A DNA stretch of 64,000 bases from Convolutriloba macropyga (lineage: Eukaryota): assembly GCF_964194025.1 (NCBI RefSeq), contig NC_134475.1, positions 44,206,001 through 44,270,000 of the forward strand, read 5' to 3'. Position numbers and translations under genes: made by a program. This document shows, in pieces, positions 53,161 through 64,000 of the stretch (its first letter is position 1; each line of letters begins with the position of its first letter). Below the pieces are notes generated by a model, which did not search any database, was not told the DNA's origin, and saw only the letters and a list, made by a program, of their open reading frames with translations.

Positions 53161-53360
53161 NNNNNNNNNNNNNNNNNNNNNNNNNNNNNNNNNNNNNNNN
53201 NNNNNNNNNNNNNNNNNNNNNNNNNNNNNNNNNNNNNNNNNNNNNNNNNNNNNNNNNNNNNNNNNNNNNNNNNNNNNNNNNNNNNNNNNNNNNNNNNNNN
53301 NNNNNNNNNNNNNNNNNNNNNNNNNNNNNNNNNNNNNNNNNNNNNNNNNNNNNNNNNNNN
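53161..53360. other. assembly gap (200 N)
   Basis: N run. Confidence 0.99.
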
Positions 53361-54437
53361 CTTGAGCTAGCTAGCTAGCTTGAGCTAGCTAGCTAGCTTG
53401 AGCTTGAGCTTGAGCTTGAGCTAGCTAGCTTGAGCTTGAGCTAGCTAGCTAGCTTGAGCTTGAGCTAGCTAGCCAGCTTGAGCTTGAGCTAGCTAGCTAG
53501 CTTGAGCTTGAGCTTGAGCTAGCTAGCTTGAGCTTGAGCTTGAGCTAGCTAGCTAGCTTGAGCTTGAGCTAGCTAGCTAGCTTGAGCTTGAGCTTGAGCT
53601 AGCTAGCTTGAGCTTGAGCTTGAGCTAGCTAGCTAGCTTGAGCTTGAGCTAGCTAGCTTGAGCTTGAGCTAGCTAGCTTGAGATTGAGCTAGCTAGCTAG
53701 CTTGTGCTTGAGCTAGCTAGCTAGCTTGAGCTTGAGCTTGAGCTAGCTGGCTTGAGCTTGAGCTAGCTAGCTTGAGCTTGAGCTAGCTAGCTTGAGCTTG
53801 AGCTAGCTAGCTAGCTTGAACTTGAGCTAGCTAGCTAGCTTGAGCTTGAGCTTGAGCTAGCTAGCTAGCTTGAGCTTGAGCTAGCTAGCTAGCTTGAGCT
53901 TGAGCTTGAGCTAGCTAGCTTGAGCTTGAGCTTGAGCTAGCTAGCTAGCTTGAGCTTGAGCTAGCTAGCTTGAGCTTGAGCTAGCTAGCTTGAGCTTGAG
54001 CTAGCTAGCTAGCTTGAGCTTGAGCTAGCTAGCTAGCTTGAACTTGAGCTAGCTAGCTAGCTTGAGCTTGAGCTAGCTAGCTAGCTTGAGCTAGCTAGCT
54101 AGCTTGAGCTTGAGCTTGAGCTTGAGCTAGCTAGCTTGAGCTTGAGCTAGCTAGCTAGCTTGAGCTTGAGCTAGCTAGCTAGCTTGAGCTTGAGCTAGCT
54201 AGCTAGCTTGAGCTTGAGCTTGAGCTAGCTAGCTTGAGCTTGAGCTTGAGCTAGCTAGCTAGCTTGAGCTTGAGCTAGCTAGCTTGAGCTTGAGCTAGCT
54301 AGCTTGAGCTTGAGCTAGCTAGCTAGCTTGAGCTTGAGCTAGCTAGCTAGCTTGAGCTTGAGCTAGCTGGCTTGAGCTTGAGCTAGATAGCTTGAGCTTG
54401 AGCTAGCTAGCTAGCTTGAGCTAGCTAGCTAGAGCTC
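53361..54437. repeat. compound AGCT-rich satellite of CTTGAG and CTAG units
   Basis: Irregular alternation of (CTTGAG)1-4 and (CTAG)2-3 for >1 kb, directly upstream of the rDNA IGS repeats. Confidence 0.97.
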
Positions 54438-54497
54438 GACCTATGAAAAGCTGCGCAAACACTTATTCTATAATAATTGCGAAAATTAAAAATTTCA

Positions 54498-54555
54498 CAA
54501 GTGAAAAGCTGCATAAACAGTAATTCTATGTGTGGGGCATTATTAGGGGGAGGTG
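54498..54555 (+). promoter_or_regulatory. putative Pol I spacer promoter 1 (+1 ~54545)
   Basis: AAGTGAAAAGCTGCA..AATTCTATGTGTGGGGCATTATTAGGGGGAGG duplicates the sequence at 58092-58145. Confidence 0.7.
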
Positions 54556-55684
54556 TCTTGTCAAAATATGGCTGGACTAAAGACCTCAACCCAGATAGGG
54601 TGGAAGGCCCTATGATCGGTCTGTTACTAATCGGTGACCGATAAAGACCTGACCAAGGCCTGTAGTAAGCTTGGTTAGGCATTACAGGAGATAACACTAA
54701 GACCGAGGGGTCTTAGAGAGCCCTCTAGCGGGGCGAATAGAGCTAGATCGAGCCTTGGGAAAGCTAGATCGAGCAGGACTGAAGCTAAAGGATAGACCGA
54801 GAGGTCTGTCTGGTCCTCCTAGAGAGGCCAAGAGAAAGTACGAGAAGCCAACTAAAGCTTGATCGGGCCTTCAGCAAGCACGACCGAGCTGTACCGGAGC
54901 TAACACTAAGACCGAGGGGTCTTAGAGAGCCCTCTAGCGGGGCGAATAGAGCTAGATCGAGCCTTGGGAAAGCTAGATCGAGCAGGACTGAAGCTAAACG
55001 ATAGACCGAGAGGTCTGTCTGGTCCTCCTAGAGAGGCCAAGAGAAAAAACGAGAAGCTAACTAAAGCTTGATCGGGCCTTCAGCAAGCACGACCGAGCTG
55101 TACCGGAGCTAACACTAAGACCGAGGGGTCTTAGAGAGCCCTCTAGCGGGGCGAATAGAGCTTGATCAAGCCTTGGGCAAGCTAGATCGAGCAGGACTGA
55201 AGCTAAGCAAGAGACCGAGAGGTCTGTCTGGTCCTCCTAGAGAGGCCAAGAGAAAGTACGAGAAGCCAACTAAAGCTTGATCGGGCCTTCAGCAAGCACG
55301 ACCGAGCTGTACCGGAGCTAACACTAAGACCGAGGGGTCTTAGAGAGCCCTCTAGCGGGGCGAATAGAGCTAGATCGAGCCTTGGGAAAGCTAGATCGAG
55401 CAGGACTGAAGCTAAACGATAGACCGAGAGGTCTGTCTGGTCCTCCTAGAGAGGCCAAGAGAAAGTACGAGAAGCTAACTAAAGCTTGATCGCGCCTTCA
55501 GCAAGCACGATTGAGCAAGACCGGAGCTAACACTAAGACCGAAGTGTCTTAGAGAGCCCTCTGGTGGGGCGAATAGAGCTAGATCGAGCCTTGGGAAAGC
55601 TAGATCGAGTAAGATTGAAGCTGAAAGAGTGTCAGAGGAGCAAATGAACCTCCAAAAAGTGAAAATCAAATTTTAGAAAAAACA

Positions 55685-55742
55685 CAAGTTAAATACTGCA
55701 TGGACAGTATTTCTATGTGTGGGGCATTATTAGGGGGAGGTG
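55685..55742 (+). promoter_or_regulatory. putative Pol I spacer promoter 2 (+1 ~55732)
   Basis: TTCTATGTGTGGGGCATTATTAGGGGGAGG copy. Confidence 0.7.
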
Positions 55743-56872
55743 TCTTGTCAAAATATGGCTGGACTAAAGACCTCAACCCGGATAGGGTGGAAGGCCCCAT
55801 GATCGGTCTGTTACTAATCGGTGACCGATAAAGACCTGACCAAGGCCTGTAGTAAGCTTGGTTAGGCATTACAGGAGTTAACACTAAGACCGAGGGGTCT
55901 TAGAGAGCCCTCTAGCGGGGCGAATAGAGCTAGATCGAGCCTTGGGAAAGCTAGATCGAGCAGGACTGAAGCTAAGCAAGAGACCGAAAGGTCTGTCTGG
56001 TCCTCCTAGAGAGGCCAAGAGAAAGTACGAGAAGCTAACTAAAGCTTGATCAGGCCTTCAGCAAGCACGACCGAGCTGTACCGGAGCTAACACTAAGACC
56101 GAGGGGTCTTAGAGAGCCCTCTAGCAGGGCGAATAGATCTAGATCGAGCCTTGGGAAAGCTAGATCGAGCAGGACTGAAGCTAAACGATAGACCGAGAGG
56201 TCTGTCTGGTCCTCCTAGAGAGGCCAAGAGAAAGTACGAGAAGCTAACTAAAGCTTGATCGGGCCTTCAGCAAGCACGACCGAGCTGTACCGGAGCTAAC
56301 ACTAAGACCGAGGGGTCTTAGAGAGCCCTCTAGCAGGGCGAATAGAGCTAGATCGAGCCTTGGGAAAGCTAGATCAAGCAGGACTGAAGCTAAACGATAG
56401 ACCGAGAGGTCTGTCTGGTCCTCCTAGAGAGGCCAAGAGAAAGTACGAGAATCTAACTAAAGCTTGATCGGGCCTTCAGCAAGCACGACCGAGCTGTACC
56501 GGAGCTAACACTAAGACCGAGGGGTCTTAGAGAGCCCTCTAGCAGGGCGAATAGAGCTAGATCGAGCCTTGGGAAAGCTAGATCGAGCAGGACTGAAGCT
56601 AAACGATAGACCGAGAGGTCTGTCTGGTCCTCCTAGAGAGGCCAAGAGGAAGTACGAGAAGCTAACTAAAGCTTGATCGCGCCTTCAGCAAGCACGATTG
56701 AGCAAGACCGGAGCTAACACTAAGACCGAAGTGTCTTAGAGAGCCCTCTAGTGGGGCGAATAGAGCTAGATCGAGCCTTGGGAAAGCTAGATCGAGTAAG
56801 ATTGAAGCTGAAAGAGTGTCAGAGGAGCAAATGAACCTCCAAAAAGTGAAAATCAAATTTTAGAAAAAAACA

Positions 56873-56930
56873 CAAGTTAAATACTGCATGGACAGTAATT
56901 CTATGTGTGGGGCATTATTAGGGAGAGGTG
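56873..56930 (+). promoter_or_regulatory. putative Pol I spacer promoter 3 (+1 ~56920)
   Basis: TTCTATGTGTGGGGCATTATTAGGGAGAGG copy. Confidence 0.7.
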
Positions 56931-57834
56931 TCTTGTCAAAATATGGCTGGACTAAAGACCTCAACCCGGATAGGGTGGAAGGCCCTATGATTGGTCTGTT
57001 ACTAATCGGTGACCGATAAAGACCTGACCAAGGCCTGTAGTAAGCTTGGTTAGGCATTACAGAAGATAACACTAAGACCGAGGGGTCTTAGAGAGCCCTC
57101 TAGCGGGGCGAATAGAGCTTGATCAAGCCTTGGGCAAGCTAGATCGAGCAGGACTGAAGCTAAACGATAGACCGAGAGGTCTGTCTGGTCCTCCTAGAGA
57201 GGCCAAGAGAAAGTACGAGAATCTAACTAAAGCTGGGTCGGGCCTTCAGCAAGCACGACCGAGCAGTACCGGAGCTAACACTAAGACCGAGGGGTCTTAG
57301 AGAGCCCTCTAGTGGGGCGAATAGAGCTAGATCGAGCCTTGGGAAAGCTAGATCGAGCAGGACTGAAGCTAAACGATAAACCGAAAGGTCTGACGGGTCC
57401 TCATAAGAGGCATGGAGAAAGATCTGATACTAAAGTACCTCTCGGAAGTAATAAAATATGCCTGATGAAGCCGGGTATGATGTTTGTTGTTTGATGGCAT
57501 TCATCGATTAGGTCTGGTGGATTCCCCATTACTCCGAGTGGTACTAGTAGAGGCTCCTACAGGGGTGAGCAAAGCGAGATCAAGCCTTAGGCAAGCTAGA
57601 TCGAGCAGAACTGAAGCTGAAAAGCAAAATAAATGACAGGTCTGTCCAAATCAATAAACTTGAAATCCAGTGTGGTCACCACGGGTCACGAGGTGAATTC
57701 CTAGCGATTGTCTGCTGAACGTATAGGAAGGCCCGAAACGGACGATAATTTCATTGCACAGTGGAGATACTATACGTTCAGGAGTAGCATACATCGGGTT
57801 TGATCTATGATCATGTCTGGTCTCCGAGGATCCA

Positions 57835-58049: not shown

Positions 58050-58148
58050 TAAAACATTTATTCTATGCAAAATTTGTGCGCAAATTTTGCAAAGTAAAAA
58101 GCTGCACTGTAGCAAATTCTATGTGTGTAGCATTATTAGGGAAGTGTT
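58050..58148 (+). promoter_or_regulatory. putative rRNA gene (Pol I) promoter, +1 ~58138
   Basis: Last copy of TTCTATGTGTG..GCATTATTAGGG before the 18S; TATTAGGG resembles TATAGGG-type Pol I initiation sites. Confidence 0.7.
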
Positions 58149-59727
58149 GTTTGATGGCACCTCTCTACTTGATGCACCAAAGAACTACCTTGATGGCTCA
58201 TGACCGCTGGTAATCTGTCGTCGCTAGTAGTTCGGAACTGAGAACAAATATGTTCGCAAATTACAACAATTATACAGCATATTGCTGAATAAAGCAGAAC
58301 CGAATAATACTCAGTGACTTTACACCAAGACTGACTAATGTCTGGATTGTATCGTCCTACTCGAGTAAGGCGAAGAAAAGCTAGAAAGATACGCTTTTCA
58401 CAAAGCAGGCTTAATGCATGCAAACCAAGGAGGAAGGAGTGATGCCCCTCCTTATAATAAGCAGAACCAAATAAAGAACAGACAGCATCATCTGTACAGT
58501 GACCAAGAAGAGGTGAAACTTCTGTATGTGAAAAGGCAATTTGAGCGAGATTTATTAGCAGACTAGTATTATGTTGTTTCTAGTAGGCGAAAGCCGAAAC
58601 ATCAACATGTGAAAATCTGATATTAAATCCTCAATCATTTTCCCTAGTATTATACAGCTATGAGTAACCTTAATTGGACACGGCAATTATTGCTGACCGG
58701 TGAAACTTTCGCATGGGAAAGACACACACACTTCTTGACAAAGCAATAAGTATTATGCTGTTTCTAGTACGCGAAAGCAGAAACATCAGCATGTGAAAGT
58801 TGTGAAGTTGAAGAATTTTTGTGTTGAGTACGATGTTGTTACTAGTAACCATGTCGACAGCTGAGAACTGTTCTCTAACCAATAGAAGGTGAAACTTCTG
58901 TATGTGAAAAGGCAATTTGAGCGAGATTTCTTAGCAGACTAGTATTATGTTGTTTCTAGTAGGCGAAAGCCGAAACATCAACATGTGAAAATCTGATATT
59001 AAATCCTCAATCATTTTCCCTAGTATTATACAGCTACTAGTAGCCGTAATTGGTCAGGGAAACATTGTTGACCGGTGAAACTTCACATGGGAAAGACACA
59101 CAAATTACTTGACAAAACAATAAGTATTATGCTGTTTCTAGTATGCGAAAGCAGAAACATCAGCATGTGAAAGTTGTGAAGTTGAAAAGTTTTTGTGTTG
59201 AGTACGGTGTTGTTACTAGTAACCATGTCGACAGCTGGAAAGCTGTTCTCTAACCAATAAAAGGTAAAACTTCTGTATCTGAAGAGGCGGCGTGATTGAG
59301 ATTTTTAACAGACTAGTATTATGTTGTTTCTAGTAGGCGAGAGCCGAAACATCGACATGTGAACATCTGGTTTTTAAATCATGAGTCAATTCTCCCTAGT
59401 ATGATACAGTTGTTAGCCGGTATTGGTAACAGTAGAACAGAGATTTGGAGGGCAAAACCTGCTCATGGGAAATGCTCACAGAGCGCTATCTACCAGTACA
59501 CATAGTATTATGCTGTTTCTAGTACGCGCGAGCCGAAACATCAGCATGTGAAATGTGTAATCGTGGGTAACTCTAAGTGTGTAGAGTACTGTGTAGTAAC
59601 TAGTAGCCATGCCAAAGCATGCATTGAAACTCTTCGTGATTTAAAAAGCTCAAAGCAAGATTGACGAGGCCGCAAGGCTATGTCTTTCTAAATTCGAAAA
59701 AATCGAAAGATTGTTCAAAGTACAATT
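58138..59727 (+). ncRNA. 5' external transcribed spacer of pre-rRNA
   Basis: Between the putative Pol I start and the 18S 5' end; highly structured on the + strand. Confidence 0.75.
58503..59612 (+). repeat. ETS array of six structured hairpins (A-B x3, ~375-bp period) with GNRA loops and AGUA/GAA motifs
   Basis: Core AGTATTATG(T/C)TGTTTCTAGTA-NGC-GNRA-GCN-GAAACATC..CATGTGAA six times, tetraloops at 58589, 58773, 58965, 59147, 59339, 59528; compensatory substitutions between copies. Confidence 0.92.
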
Positions 59728-60725
59728 AAACTGATTGATCCTGTCAGTTGCCATATGCTTGTCTGAAAGACTAAGCCATGCATGTGCAAGCGAAGCTTGA
59801 AAAAGTGGAACCGCGAATGGCTCATTAAATCAGTTACTATCTATTAGTTGATTTGCAAGCTAAATGAATAACTGCGGTAACCCTGCAGCTAATGCATGCT
59901 GATTGTCCGACACTGTCGGAGACTTTTACAAGACTACACCGGGTGATTTGCTAAGTACAGACACATCCCGTGATGAGTCCTAGTAACTGAAAGATCCCAG
60001 ATAGCTTCGGCTTGGGGACGGAACTTCCGAATTTCTGACCTATCAACCTATGATGGTAGTGTAACGGACTACCATGGTTGTGACGGGTAACGGGGAATCA
60101 GGGTTCGATTCCGGAGAGGGAGCCTTAGAAACGGCTACCACATCCAAGGAAGGCAGCAGGCACGCAAATTACCCACTCTCCGCACGAGGAGGTAGTGACT
60201 AGAAATAATGATATGAACCTTTATGGTTTGTAATCAGAATGGAATGGACTTAAAAGCTCCATTGATGAACGAGTAGAGGGCAAGTCTGGTGCCAGCAGCC
60301 GCGGTAATACCAGCCTCTACAAGCGTATGCAATAGTTGCTGCGTTTAAAAAGCTCATAGTTGGATCTGTTTGAGTAGAACGGCAACATGGTCTTCAGTTA
60401 AATCTGTTGACTCGTTCCGCTCATCCTTCGCATCGAAGAAATAGTTTGCACTTAAATGTGACGAACTGTGGAAACGGTGTTTTCACCCTGAGAAAATTAG
60501 AGTGTTCAAAGCATCCTTTGGGATCGAATAATAAAGCATGGAATAATGGAGAATGACCCGCTACTCGATTGATGCCGGTTGGCTGAGTGCGGTAATGATT
60601 GAAAGGAACAGACGGGGGCATTTGTATTGCTACGTTAGAGGTGAAATTCTTGGATCGTGGCAAGACAAACTACTGCGAAAGCATTTGCCAAGAATGTTTT
60701 CATTAATCAAGAACGAAAGTCAGAG
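59728..60725 (+). rRNA. 18S rRNA, 5' ~1 kb only (truncated)
   Basis: Conserved blocks TTGATCCTG.CAGT, AAGCCATGCATG, GGGTTCGATTCCGGAGAGGGAGCC, GTGCCAGCAGCCGCGGTAAT, GGTGAAATTCTTGGA, ATCAAGAACGAAAGTCAGAG; similarity stops abruptly at 60725. Confidence 0.97.
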
Positions 60726-63700
60726 TATTACATGTAAAATTAAGGAGACAATCGCATCGCAATTTCCAAATCTAATGTCGATAATTGGACTCTCAAAGAC
60801 TCATGTAGCGAAATCATAGTCTCATCAAATGTTTACAGCAAAGCGTCAAAAAGGTCGATGCGTTCCGATTAATATACAACCTAGAGTCACAGTTGAATCA
60901 AATCGATTACAGAAAGAAGGACATAGTGAAAAAATTGTCTAGTTGTTCTGATGAATACTTCTTAACTCTGATAGTAATCACAATAAAGGAAGATCAATCT
61001 ATAAAATTAGCACTGGACTCCAAAGTTTTAATTAAATCAACCAACAAAAATAAATATCAATTGCCTAACAACGAAATGTTAATTTATTCAATTTCACGAC
61101 AACTTACAAATACTCAAAACGGTCAGCAAGCATACTTTTCATCAATAGACCTTATGTTGCTTATAGTTGGTTACAATCGCATGTAGACACTGCAAAACAC
61201 TCCAATTTCAACTTCCATTCTGGAGAATCAACTGGCACTTATAGATTTAAAACTGGATTCTACGGTCTCACTGACATGTCAGCAGAATTTCAAAAAGCTA
61301 TGGATTATACACTTGTAGATCTTCAAAACACTTATTGCTTTCTTGGTGACATTATTATTGTTAGCATAGGATCTGAATCCGATCACCTTAGTTATGTCAC
61401 CAAATGTCTCAAAAAGTTAGACGAAGATAAATTAAGAATTAATCTTCAGAAATGCCTCTTCGCAAAAACAGAGACCGAATGGCTTGGGCACATATTTACT
61501 CAAGCCGGTATATGACCACTTGAAAATAAAACCGCAAATATATTAGCAATACCAGCATCATCGACATTATAACACTTAAGATCCTTTCTTGGTTCAGTAC
61601 ACTATATTAGTAAATTCAAACCAAATTTAGCACAACTTTGTCAACCCCTTAGACCACTTCTCAAAAAATCTGCTCAATTCGTCTGGACTGAGGACCACAC
61701 TAAACATTTCAATATCATAAAAACAAAATTGCAGCAAGTACTGAAAATGGCCATTATAATCCTCAGCTAGATGTTCGTGTTAAATGTGATGCATCTCTTT
61801 CTGTATTGGGAGCTGCACTTGAACAGAATAACCTTGACGGATGACAACTCATGGCAATCGCGTCGCAATTTCTAAATCAAACAGAAGAGCGATATAGTGT
61901 CAACGAATTGGAGCTATTAGGAGTCGTTTGGTCAATCGACTACTTCAAATACTTTCTGTATGGAAAAAACTTCACGGTAATAACCGATTATCGTGCATTA
62001 TTATCAATACTAAAAGAAGATAGATCAAATAAATCCTATAATAACCGCCTTTCTAGATGGATTGACCGTCAGCTTCCCTATAACTTAACAATTGAATTTA
62101 TGCTTGGAGCAAAAATGGACCTTGCAGATTATATATCTAGAAATCCTTTTGCCAAAGCTAAAAATGTTTCCGCATATAACGAACATTTTGTAGTACTAAC
62201 AATATCTAAAATTCGGGACTTATTGAAACATTTAATTCGAAAGAAACAGCACATTGTACAGAAATTCAATAGAATATTAAAAGTTACATTCACCCTCTTA
62301 TCCTGCAAATCGGTTAATCGCGCCGCAAATACCTACTTTAATACAAAACAATGCAAAATTTCGCATTAAACCAGTTGCATTACAATCGTCACACTATAAT
62401 ACAGTATTACCACTTGCCTCGCAATTGGTTACTAAAAATAAAATTATTAATCCTCATCTCAATATGTCAATCGCATCGCAAATGCCTTCTCAAAATTTAA
62501 AACCACAATTTGCACTAAAAAATCTATCATTGCATAAATCACATTCCATTAACAAATTTGCTACAACTGCGCTGCAAAAGTCAGACAATAAAGAAGGCGA
62601 ACAATCTGAAGATTTAGACTCAATAAAGCCCATATTTGACACCAACTCAAGGAATCAACACAAATTCTCAATATTAGGCGCGAAACTGCAAATTCCTGAG
62701 TATAAATACAACCAACCGAAAAAAACCTCTGTTTTTGACCAAAGCAAACTCAGAATTCATCCGTCAAATAATCATTCGATAAAATCAATCTCTAAGATGA
62801 CACGAACTAGAGCAGAAAAATCCACACCAACGAGGGCCCGAGTCACCTTCTCGGACAACTCCCTTTCTAATACGACACCTGCAACAAATACATACTCAAA
62901 CACAAAAACTACTTCGTCTGTCAGTGCCTTCGATACATCAGAAGACATGAGATTTACAGATACCCTTAATCGAATTTTCAGCAAGAAATTGTAGGCAATT
63001 CTATCTGGAAAGGATGATATATTGAAAGAGGTGCGCGATTGTGTCATCCGAAATGACGAGGACAGACTAAAAAATTAGCCCCTAGTTCTATTCCTACTGG
63101 CGGTACCTAAGCGTAAAACATGGTTGTCTGTGCATAGACGAAAGGATTGCAATTCCTAAAGCAATCAAAGACGCTATGCGAGAGGACATTCTTTCCACGC
63201 ATCCTGGAAGCTTTGCAATGATGTCCCTAGCACAGAACATTTTGTGGCCATATATCCACCAAGATGTGTTGGCAAAAACCAGCGAGTGCAAAGCTTGCAC
63301 GGAAATTGGTAAGAACTTAAAACCATTGATTCCGCAGAGGAAATGGTCACAATTACCAAAGTGTATTGAACCGAACGACGAAATCCAAATAGATTTTGAT
63401 GAACCTATTATTGATGAAAAAGGCATAGAACAACATTTCATTAAAAGCATAGATTGATACTTAAAATAACCTACCGCAGAAATAGTAAAGAAGGCTTCTG
63501 ACCTAATAGTTATTAAATTCCTTATTAAGTATATTTACAATCACGGAGTACCCAGAACACTTAGATTAGACCAAGCTAGATGTTTTACAGGAAAAAGAAG
63601 TTGGAAACTTTTTTTACTGAAAATAATATTACACCAATATATGCACCTGCAAAGAACCACAGAGCAATAGGATTAGTACAACGCCTTAATCAACCTTTTA

Positions 63701-64000
63701 AGCGTCAATTATCATGTGTTAAAGCACACCTAAATAAAAAATTTAATCTCGCACATTCAATACATGCAATTATACAGCGATTAAGAATATCTAAACGCAA
63801 AACAATTGAAAATACACCATTTGAAGCACATTTTGGTAGACGATGTAACACACCAACTTCAAATATCACCACAAAGTCAAGCAATAAGAATTTAAATTTT
63901 AACAAAATAATTAAATGTTATTTTGATGAAGATACAATCCCAGGCAGGTCTTACCTCACAGACACGCAATGGGCGGATACGGGCATGTGTTCGGACTTTG
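60726..64000 (+). mobile_element. decayed Ty3/Gypsy pol (RT, RNase H, integrase), runs off window
   Basis: QKGR.VP, SIKLALDSK, FKTGFYGLTDMSAEFQKAMD, FLGDIII, CDAS, YSVNELELLGVVW, HPGSFAM..CKAC, GVPRTLRLDQ; multiple stops and frameshifts; no LTR at the 18S junction. Confidence 0.9.

Follow-up and report, generated by a model that had tools for sequence, protein, structure and literature searches.

The 64,000-nucleotide stretch of the Convolutriloba macropyga genome considered here (contig NC_134475.1, positions 44,206,001 to 44,270,000 of the forward strand; "the window") contains a tandem array of six long hairpins in the 5′ external transcribed spacer (ETS) of a ribosomal DNA (rDNA) copy. 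The same hairpin family also builds ITS1 and ITS2, the two internal transcribed spacers. The family is very probably a selected, structured RNA module of all three transcribed spacers. The stems of its units change with compensation from copy to copy, while short internal loops, in which a 5′-AGUA-3′ strand faces a 5′-GAA-3′ strand, stay nearly constant.

The hairpins of the 5′ external transcribed spacer

The array is found by Tandem Repeats Finder (TRF) at window positions 58502-59612, with a period of 374 bp (2.4 copies at 90%); its third copy has diverged further. Each 374-bp repeat consists of two related halves of about 187 bp, and types A and B alternate along the array. When the half-units are folded singly, each gives one long imperfect hairpin. 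The hairpins, whose limits are taken from the alignment, are 151-159 nt long:

58512..58669, + strand: hairpin E1, type A; four AGUA/GAA loops, apical loop GAAA
58699..58850, + strand: hairpin E2, type B; four AGUA/GAA loops, apical loop GAAA
58888..59045, + strand: hairpin E3, type A; four AGUA/GAA loops
59074..59224, + strand: hairpin E4, type B; four AGUA/GAA loops
59263..59421, + strand: hairpin E5, diverged type A; three AGUA/GAA loops (the outermost is degenerate), apical loop GAGA
59451..59608, + strand: hairpin E6, diverged type B; three strict AGUA/GAA loops (the outermost has AAA for GAA), apical loop GCGA

An original prediction, made from the letters of this stretch, had described six hairpins alternating as A and B, and had placed them within a few nucleotides of these limits. 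It had counted about 22 AGUA/GAA motifs; the ETS has 24 loop positions, and AGUA stands opposite GAA at 22 of them. In the outer two loops of each hairpin, GAA is carried by the 5′ strand and AGUA by the 3′ strand; the inner two are reversed, as had been noticed. The apical sequence AGUA-NGC-GNRA-GCN-GAA, also part of that description, is found in all six ETS units, with the loops GAAA (four times), GAGA and GCGA. The compensatory substitutions that it cited are all present in the alignment of the units.

AGTA is observed 26 times in the ETS array compared with 8.9 ± 3.1 expected under a first-order model, and its complement TACT occurs at expectation.

One family in three spacers

When the ETS array is compared by BLAST with one whole rDNA unit, it matches ITS1 and ITS2 as well. 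An nhmmer profile finds 23 hairpin units per rDNA unit, all in sense orientation: six in the 5′ ETS, nine in ITS1 and eight in ITS2. A covariance model of the 63-nt core recovers the same 23 units at 68-87 bits each, and this model gives no comparable match to 18S, 28S or the intergenic spacer (IGS), none to the first 1.2 kb of ITS1 and none anywhere on the minus strand. AGUA/GAA loops are present at 84 of the 92 loop positions of the 23 units, which makes 84 loops per pre-rRNA.

The array makes up most of ITS1 (2959 nt) and of ITS2 (1683 nt), and about 4.3 kb of spacer in each rDNA unit is made from this one hairpin module. Counted from the last hairpin stem of each array, about 120 nt remain to the 5′ end of 18S, 80 nt to that of 5.8S and 60 nt to that of 28S; with the linker included, the arrays end about 100, 66 and 46 nt upstream of these ends. 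The original prediction was right to place the module in the 5′ ETS, but the module is not specific to that spacer. Because it is common to the ETS, ITS1 and ITS2, any function should concern the spacers generally rather than docking of the small-subunit processome specifically.

Identity between unit types is 48-68%. Copies within one type in ITS1 are 96-99% identical, and all eight ITS2 units differ from one another. The divergence between types, taken with the near-identity of the ITS1 copies, indicates that the family is old and its amplification in ITS1 recent.

The array is present throughout the rDNA of this genome. As a stretch of 1248 nt, the ETS array occurs in identical form at no fewer than 40 further places in the genome of 1.18 Gb. 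The core pattern has 5766 matches genome-wide, compared with 0 for a reversed control; at about nine core matches per unit, this corresponds to roughly 640 rDNA units. Intact rDNA is among them: unit C72 (G000:C72:14500-34499) has an 1824-nt 18S, a 5.8S and an uninterrupted 3522-nt 28S, with intact R2 site and sarcin-ricin loop (SRL), and carries the same arrays. The spacer units run head-to-tail and are homogenised across rDNA copies, as tandem subrepeats under concerted evolution are. Public sequencing runs that contain part of the array come from 11 studies, and runs X1-X15 contain 18-88% of its k-mers. One run, recorded as RNA, has 33% of the array's 31-mers, a hint that the array may be present in pre-rRNA.

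Individual rDNA copies vary. The length of the ITS1 array differs among copies by multiples of a 378-bp dimer, and the distance from ETS to ITS2 is 6292, 6672 or 7050 nt. A copy on C3 (G000:C3:24324543-24326999; L040:7554-10000) has at least 13 ITS1 units rather than nine. In an aberrant unit on C352 (L036:2050-4605; G000:C352:29049-31604, minus strand), a full ETS and about the first 37 nt of 18S are fused directly to the middle of the ITS2 array, followed by 28S. This unit lacks ITS1, 5.8S and the remainder of 18S.

Covariation and conservation

The 23 units were aligned by sequence alone, using MAFFT. The RNAalifold consensus of this alignment is an unbranched rod of six helices (H1-H6) with 30 pairs, 21 of which show compensatory double changes. 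Pairing was tested on this consensus together with the pair that adjoins the apical motif. In this structure 91.4% of cells are paired, compared with 76.6 ± 1.0% in shuffles (0 of 500) and with 27-46% when the partners are slid by one to three columns. Cells with double changes number 110, compared with 35.8 in shuffles. A set of 14 non-redundant units gives the same picture, with 88.2% of cells paired (72.7% in shuffles) and 71 double changes (22.7 in shuffles; 0 of 1000). Some pair columns hold four to six different standard pair types.

Conservation is unevenly spread along the rod. It reaches 97% in the AGUA/GAA loop columns, 65% in the four outer helices H1-H4, and 42-49% in the central variable part and in the linkers; the latter are poorly conserved stretches of about 20-35 nt between hairpins. 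The hairpins thus covary, and the claim that near-invariant AGUA and GAA strands sit on drifting stems is borne out.

The structural constraint can also be assigned to a strand. Pairs of the G-U or U-G kind number 109, compared with 21 of the A-C or C-A kind, and the minimum free energy of the sense strand lies below that of its reverse complement in 23 of 23 units. The excess of G-U pairs and the better folding of the sense strand therefore place the constraint on the sense RNA, not on the DNA or an antisense transcript. Together, compensatory pairing, fixed loop strands and sense-strand asymmetry point to purifying selection, either on the sense pre-rRNA itself or on the pieces into which it is cut.

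Copies of the module also occur dispersed outside the rDNA. Against ETS units 5-6, a dispersed two-unit fragment on C5 (L039:3524-3882; G000:C5:51715523-51715881) shows 91% identity. Each strand of its H5 has lost 3 nt, the two deletions matching, and none of its 58 loop-E sites is changed. Loop sites are unchanged in the dispersed fragments on both C5 and C13, which is ambiguous evidence, as the differences in these fragments may have arisen in functional rDNA.

A different fold, in which the 3′ side of one unit pairs with the 5′ side of the next, was tried and rejected. Covariation favours pairing inside the unit for every helix in each array, H1-H3 of all three arrays among them. The junctions between units do have some likeness to the units themselves: those at 58638-58725, 58819-58915, 59014-59099 and 59193-59245 match the core covariance model weakly (20-26 bits), as do the corresponding junctions of L031 (10-23 bits). 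These weak matches indicate a half-period pseudo-symmetry of the array. A perfect palindrome, GTTACTAGTAAC, terminates many units and is able to form a competing local hairpin.

The internal loops

The bulged-G or loop E motif, AGUA opposite GAA, is known from the SRL of 28S rRNA, from loop E of eukaryotic 5S rRNA, from loop E of potato spindle tuber viroid (PSTVd), and from domain IIId of the hepatitis C virus internal ribosome entry site (HCV IRES). In the spacer units, an AGUA strand likewise stands opposite a GAA strand, and the motif is flanked by Watson-Crick helices (H1-H6) that covary. Judged by sequence consensus and flanking helices, the loops fit the loop E or bulged-G type. They would then be predicted to contain a bulged-G triple together with trans U-A, sheared A-G and A-A pairs. 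The second loop has the form AGUAC/GGAA, which equals the consensus of loop E in eukaryotic 5S rRNA. In six of the 23 units the outermost loop has AAA in place of GAA, a substitution that may be tolerated as a sheared A-A pair.

Likeness to the SRL, which in the 28S of this genome is AGUACGAGAGGAAC, is limited. As in the SRL, a short stem and, in the majority of units, a GNRA loop come after the apical AGUA/GAA motif. The stem between motif and tetraloop is, however, 3-4 bp long here, compared with a single C-G pair in the SRL. Among the apical loops of the 23 units are 11 GAAA loops and one GAGA (in E5A), and the ITS1 units have CUUG, CCUG or 7-nt loops. The spacer module also differs from the 28S SRL, 5S, PSTVd and HCV IRES IIId motifs as a group, in that it occurs in 84 copies per transcript, in spacer RNA, and in two orientations.

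Relatives and database matches

A scan of metagenomes with the core motif gave 0 matches. With the unusual 5′ end of the 18S as query, five contigs were found, whose 18S is 72-82% identical; neither nhmmer (E ≤ 1) nor the core covariance model finds hairpin units in these five contigs. The nearest relative among them is L042, at 82%.

No Rfam family reaches its gathering threshold, as the original prediction would lead one to expect. A scan of the ETS at E ≤ 10 returns only rRNA, a match to RT-2 RNA below threshold, and noise; no ribozyme, snoRNA or 5S match is found at this level. RT-2 RNA (RF03077) resembles the units in having an AGUA-gcc-gaaa-ggc-GAAA hairpin within an outer helix. The match scores 17.8 bits (E 0.28) compared with a gathering score of 40, and the remainder of this motif of about 220 nt is unmatched. 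Membership in the RT-2 family was therefore rejected, only a local module being held in common.

Complementarity between the conserved blocks and mature 18S, 5.8S and 28S is limited to 8-9-mers, which is the chance level, and the array and U3 likewise have only chance 9-mers in common. In a full-text literature search, neither a single family occupying all three spacers nor spacer repeats whose loop-E-type loops are fixed were found described. No ETS with this architecture was found in that search, which agrees with what had been supposed at the outset.

An origin as a mobile element resembling a miniature inverted-repeat transposable element (MITE) or short interspersed nuclear element (SINE) was also considered and rejected. 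Matches at four chromosomal places outside rDNA contigs (C3, C5, C6 and C13; these four were covered, of 5766 core matches) are collinear fragments of rDNA spacer.

Genomic setting

Around the hairpins, the window has the following features:

54486..57540, + strand: IGS super-repeat, about 1187 bp, three copies; each has a promoter-like 51-nt element (at 54499, 55686 and 56874), then 209-bp subrepeats
58092..58142, + strand: presumed RNA polymerase I (Pol I) gene promoter or start region; fourth copy (76%) of the spacer-promoter element, containing AAAAGCTGCA
58252..58381, + strand: 5′ ETS block of 130 nt, 76% conserved with the metagenomic relative L042; holds complements to U3
59609..59727, + strand: 3′ tail of the 5′ ETS without repeats, reaching the 5′ end of 18S
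59728..60729, + strand: 18S rRNA, first ~1002 nt; the copy is broken at this point, and intact units elsewhere have the same array
60730..64000, + strand: decayed pol fragments of a long terminal repeat (LTR) retroelement (reverse transcriptase, RNase H, integrase), in place of the remaining 18S

The element at 58092-58142 is the fourth copy of a 51-nt sequence whose other three copies each head one of the 1187-bp super-repeats. Duplicates of a spacer promoter followed by a gene promoter form the classic rDNA arrangement. The core of the element, AAAAGCTGCA, is also found twice at the 5′ end of L042. Downstream, the block conserved with L042 contains two short complements to U3, found with the genome's own U3 as query. 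One is a 9-nt complement to nt 64-72 (the 3′-hinge) at 58263-58271, and the other a 10-nt complement to nt 38-47 (the 5′-hinge) at 58367-58376. They are in the expected order, and so short that they are weak evidence alone.

The promoter duplicates, the two sites complementary to the U3 hinges and the block common to L042 place the array inside the 5′ ETS, where the original prediction had put it. The 5′ end of 18S is at 59728 by Rfam, about 120 nt past the last ETS hairpin. By this layout the 5′ ETS is estimated at about 1.6 kb, of which the array would make up about 70%, downstream of the presumed U3 docking region. Four or more U3 genes are carried by C10 in a span of about 3.5 Mb (G000:C10:44.5-48.0 Mb).

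Upstream, the IGS in the window (53359-57540) consists of a long 20/24-nt GCTAGC/TTGAGC minisatellite and then the three super-repeats, in each of which about 4.5 copies of the 209-bp subrepeat follow the promoter-like element. At the other end, the 18S match stops at 60729 (about position 1002) and LTR pol sequence follows, which makes the copy in the window a broken rDNA unit, situated on a chromosome arm (G000:C8). The pol remnants (60730-64000) include RVT_1, RT_RNaseH and Integrase_H2C2 and have many stops. A second rDNA copy on the same chromosome (L033:8070-9942; G000:C8:58933069-58934941, minus strand) has an ETS array identical to this one. For the 18S of that copy the score is 962 bits over 1873 nt, compared with about 1465 bits for intact copies, and this 18S is probably damaged.

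The 28S of C426, the rDNA unit first used as a reference, is interrupted by an insertion of about 2.15 kb that ends in poly(A) (L034:1490-3680; G000:C426:24489-26679). A 14-bp target duplication on the flanks of the insertion, TAGCCAAATGCCTC, starts at the classical R2 target site. The insertion is probably a 5′-truncated non-LTR element.

Alternative explanations

One alternative to a selected module is that the hairpins are neutral or selfish spacer subrepeats. In this model, they are products of unequal crossover that are tolerated as self-folding, and their conservation comes from recent amplification and gene conversion. Hairpin-forming tandem subrepeats are indeed documented in ITS2 of Anopheles barbirostris (repeats of about 110 bp) and in ITS1 of An. 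punctulatus (PMC3994965). There, as here, tandem repeats with a hairpin in each enlarge the spacer, to more than 1.5 kb, under concerted evolution (PMC3994965). The family described here differs in that the 5′ ETS, ITS1 and ITS2 share it and in that its units are longer (about 185 nt) and far more diverged. It also combines four near-invariant loops with strong compensatory change, and no such conservation of a motif is described for the mosquito repeats (PMC3994965).

In plant rDNA, subrepeats are rated "occasional" in the 5′ ETS and "exceptional" in the ITS (PMC8724763, Table 1). The plant 5′ ETS repeats resemble the present array as a repeated block between transcription start and 18S, but are not described as covarying loop-E rods, nor as common to both ITS (PMC8724763).

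Besides these precedents, the neutral model is favoured by the 96-99% identity of ITS1 copies, by their number varying in 378-bp steps, and by the nearest relative, which has no array. It has difficulty with the pattern of conservation: unit types differ by 32-50%, yet eight short loop blocks are 97% conserved between covarying stems, which conversion tracts could not produce. The sense-strand G-U bias, moreover, indicates selection on RNA. Neutral repeats are an improbable explanation, though one that keeps some weight.

Selection on the sense RNA would equally be expected if the hairpins were excised from the pre-rRNA as stable RNAs of about 150-190 nt, or were substrates of a Dicer or Drosha type, made in excess over rRNA. 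The discrete rods, with poorly conserved linkers of about 20-35 nt between them, suit such a role. However, no Rfam family matches them, and their stems are interrupted every 5-7 bp, unlike typical Dicer substrates. This explanation is quite improbable.

The remaining three readings are disfavoured by the tests run. The first, put forward in the original prediction, is that the units mimic the SRL and act as a decoy for ribotoxins or translational GTPases. The apical order AGUA-stem-GNRA-stem-GAA is that of the SRL, but a 3-bp stem replaces the one C-G pair that closes GAGA there. Only one of the 23 loops is GAGA, those of ITS1 are of other kinds altogether (CUUG, CCUG or 7 nt), and three of the four motifs in each unit are internal loops that have no tetraloop. 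Pre-rRNA spacers, in addition, are nucleolar and so kept apart from cytosolic ribotoxins and elongation factors. A decoy is very unlikely.

A role at the DNA level is equally unlikely. Imperfect palindromes, with short perfect ones such as GTTACTAGTAAC and CATG among them, could act as cruciforms or protein sites in rDNA replication, recombination or transcription. Against this stand the preference for G-U over A-C pairs (109 compared with 21), the better folding of the sense strand in 23 of 23 units, the enrichment of AGTA but not TACT, and the placement of all 23 units in the same orientation and only in transcribed spacers.

Least likely of all are small self-cleaving ribozymes that cut the spacers into units: CU-AGUA-GGC-GAAA-GCC-GAAAC is superficially like the helix II region of the hammerhead, and loop B of the hairpin ribozyme is loop-E-like, but no Rfam ribozyme family is found over the ETS at E ≤ 10, and the covarying structure is an unbranched rod with neither a CUGANGA core nor a three-way junction that holds a UH cleavage site.

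A possible docking platform

The usual mark of sequence-specific recognition is a conserved loop on a drifting stem, and for this reason the loops of the spacer module are proposed to be recognition sites. The unit is a rod of about 185 nt in which four 5′-AGUA-3′/5′-GAA-3′ loops lie between helices H1-H6 with pseudo-twofold symmetry, and it has been tandemly amplified in the 5′ ETS, ITS1 and ITS2. In the favoured model, the roughly 84 loops of each transcript would serve as repeated docking sites on the nascent pre-rRNA for a putative trans-acting factor, most likely a protein, which would organise how the unusually long spacers are folded, compacted, processed or turned over.

The idea of a landing array, raised in the original prediction, is plausible in this form. 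What stands of that interpretation is a covarying, selected and multivalent structured RNA; its restriction to the ETS does not stand, and the evidence of stem and loop tells against its SRL decoy. For the whole reading, a selected module in all three spacers together with a docking platform, the case is evenly balanced. The docking mechanism considered on its own is tentative, and somewhat more likely to be wrong than right.

Several observations weigh against this reading. For the apical loop of most units a second register competes: GUUUC and GAAAC pair, and UAGUA is left as a bulge. The helix distal to the apical loop is ambiguous in most units. A clear preference for the loop-E register is confined to the ITS1 D-type and one ITS2 unit, whose compensating changes (CGUU/AACG, CUGU/ACAG) fit that register alone. 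Free-energy z-scores are also weak, at about -0.1 to -3.3 with mononucleotide shuffles and -0.65 with dinucleotide shuffles of one unit; such values are to be expected where loops penalised by the energy model interrupt the stems every 5-7 bp. Since thermodynamic stability is unremarkable, the support for the structure comes from covariation and not from free energy, and the covariation set consists of paralogous units of one genome with shared ancestry.

Lastly, L042 has no units between the conserved ETS block and 18S. Because the ETS of this relative is without them, the array is, as far as these sequences go, a lineage-specific addition that is not deeply conserved and not essential in general.

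Significance

Transcribed spacers are usually viewed as fast-evolving sequences with few conserved processing signals. The module described here is a spacer element whose internal loops stay constant while their surroundings are rewritten with compensation. Tandem spacer repeats that form hairpins were known already; one family in all three spacers, with fixed loop-E-type loops, has no counterpart in the literature searched. It is a rare case in which spacer function can be read from covariation within a single genome, and it offers 84 natural sequence contexts of one three-dimensional motif in every transcript.

If the hairpins are selfish, they still show a structured repeat colonising three separate spacers of an essential gene. 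If instead the loops are recognition sites, they would form a natural and highly multivalent RNA-protein system that is made in step with rRNA. It is conceivable, though unlikely, that this lineage has thereby gained an extra layer of ribosome biogenesis, in which a dedicated factor docks up to about 84 times on each pre-rRNA, across all three spacers. Such a factor would act as a multivalent scaffold that may compact the long spacers, time their removal or mark them for it, or may organise the nucleolus.

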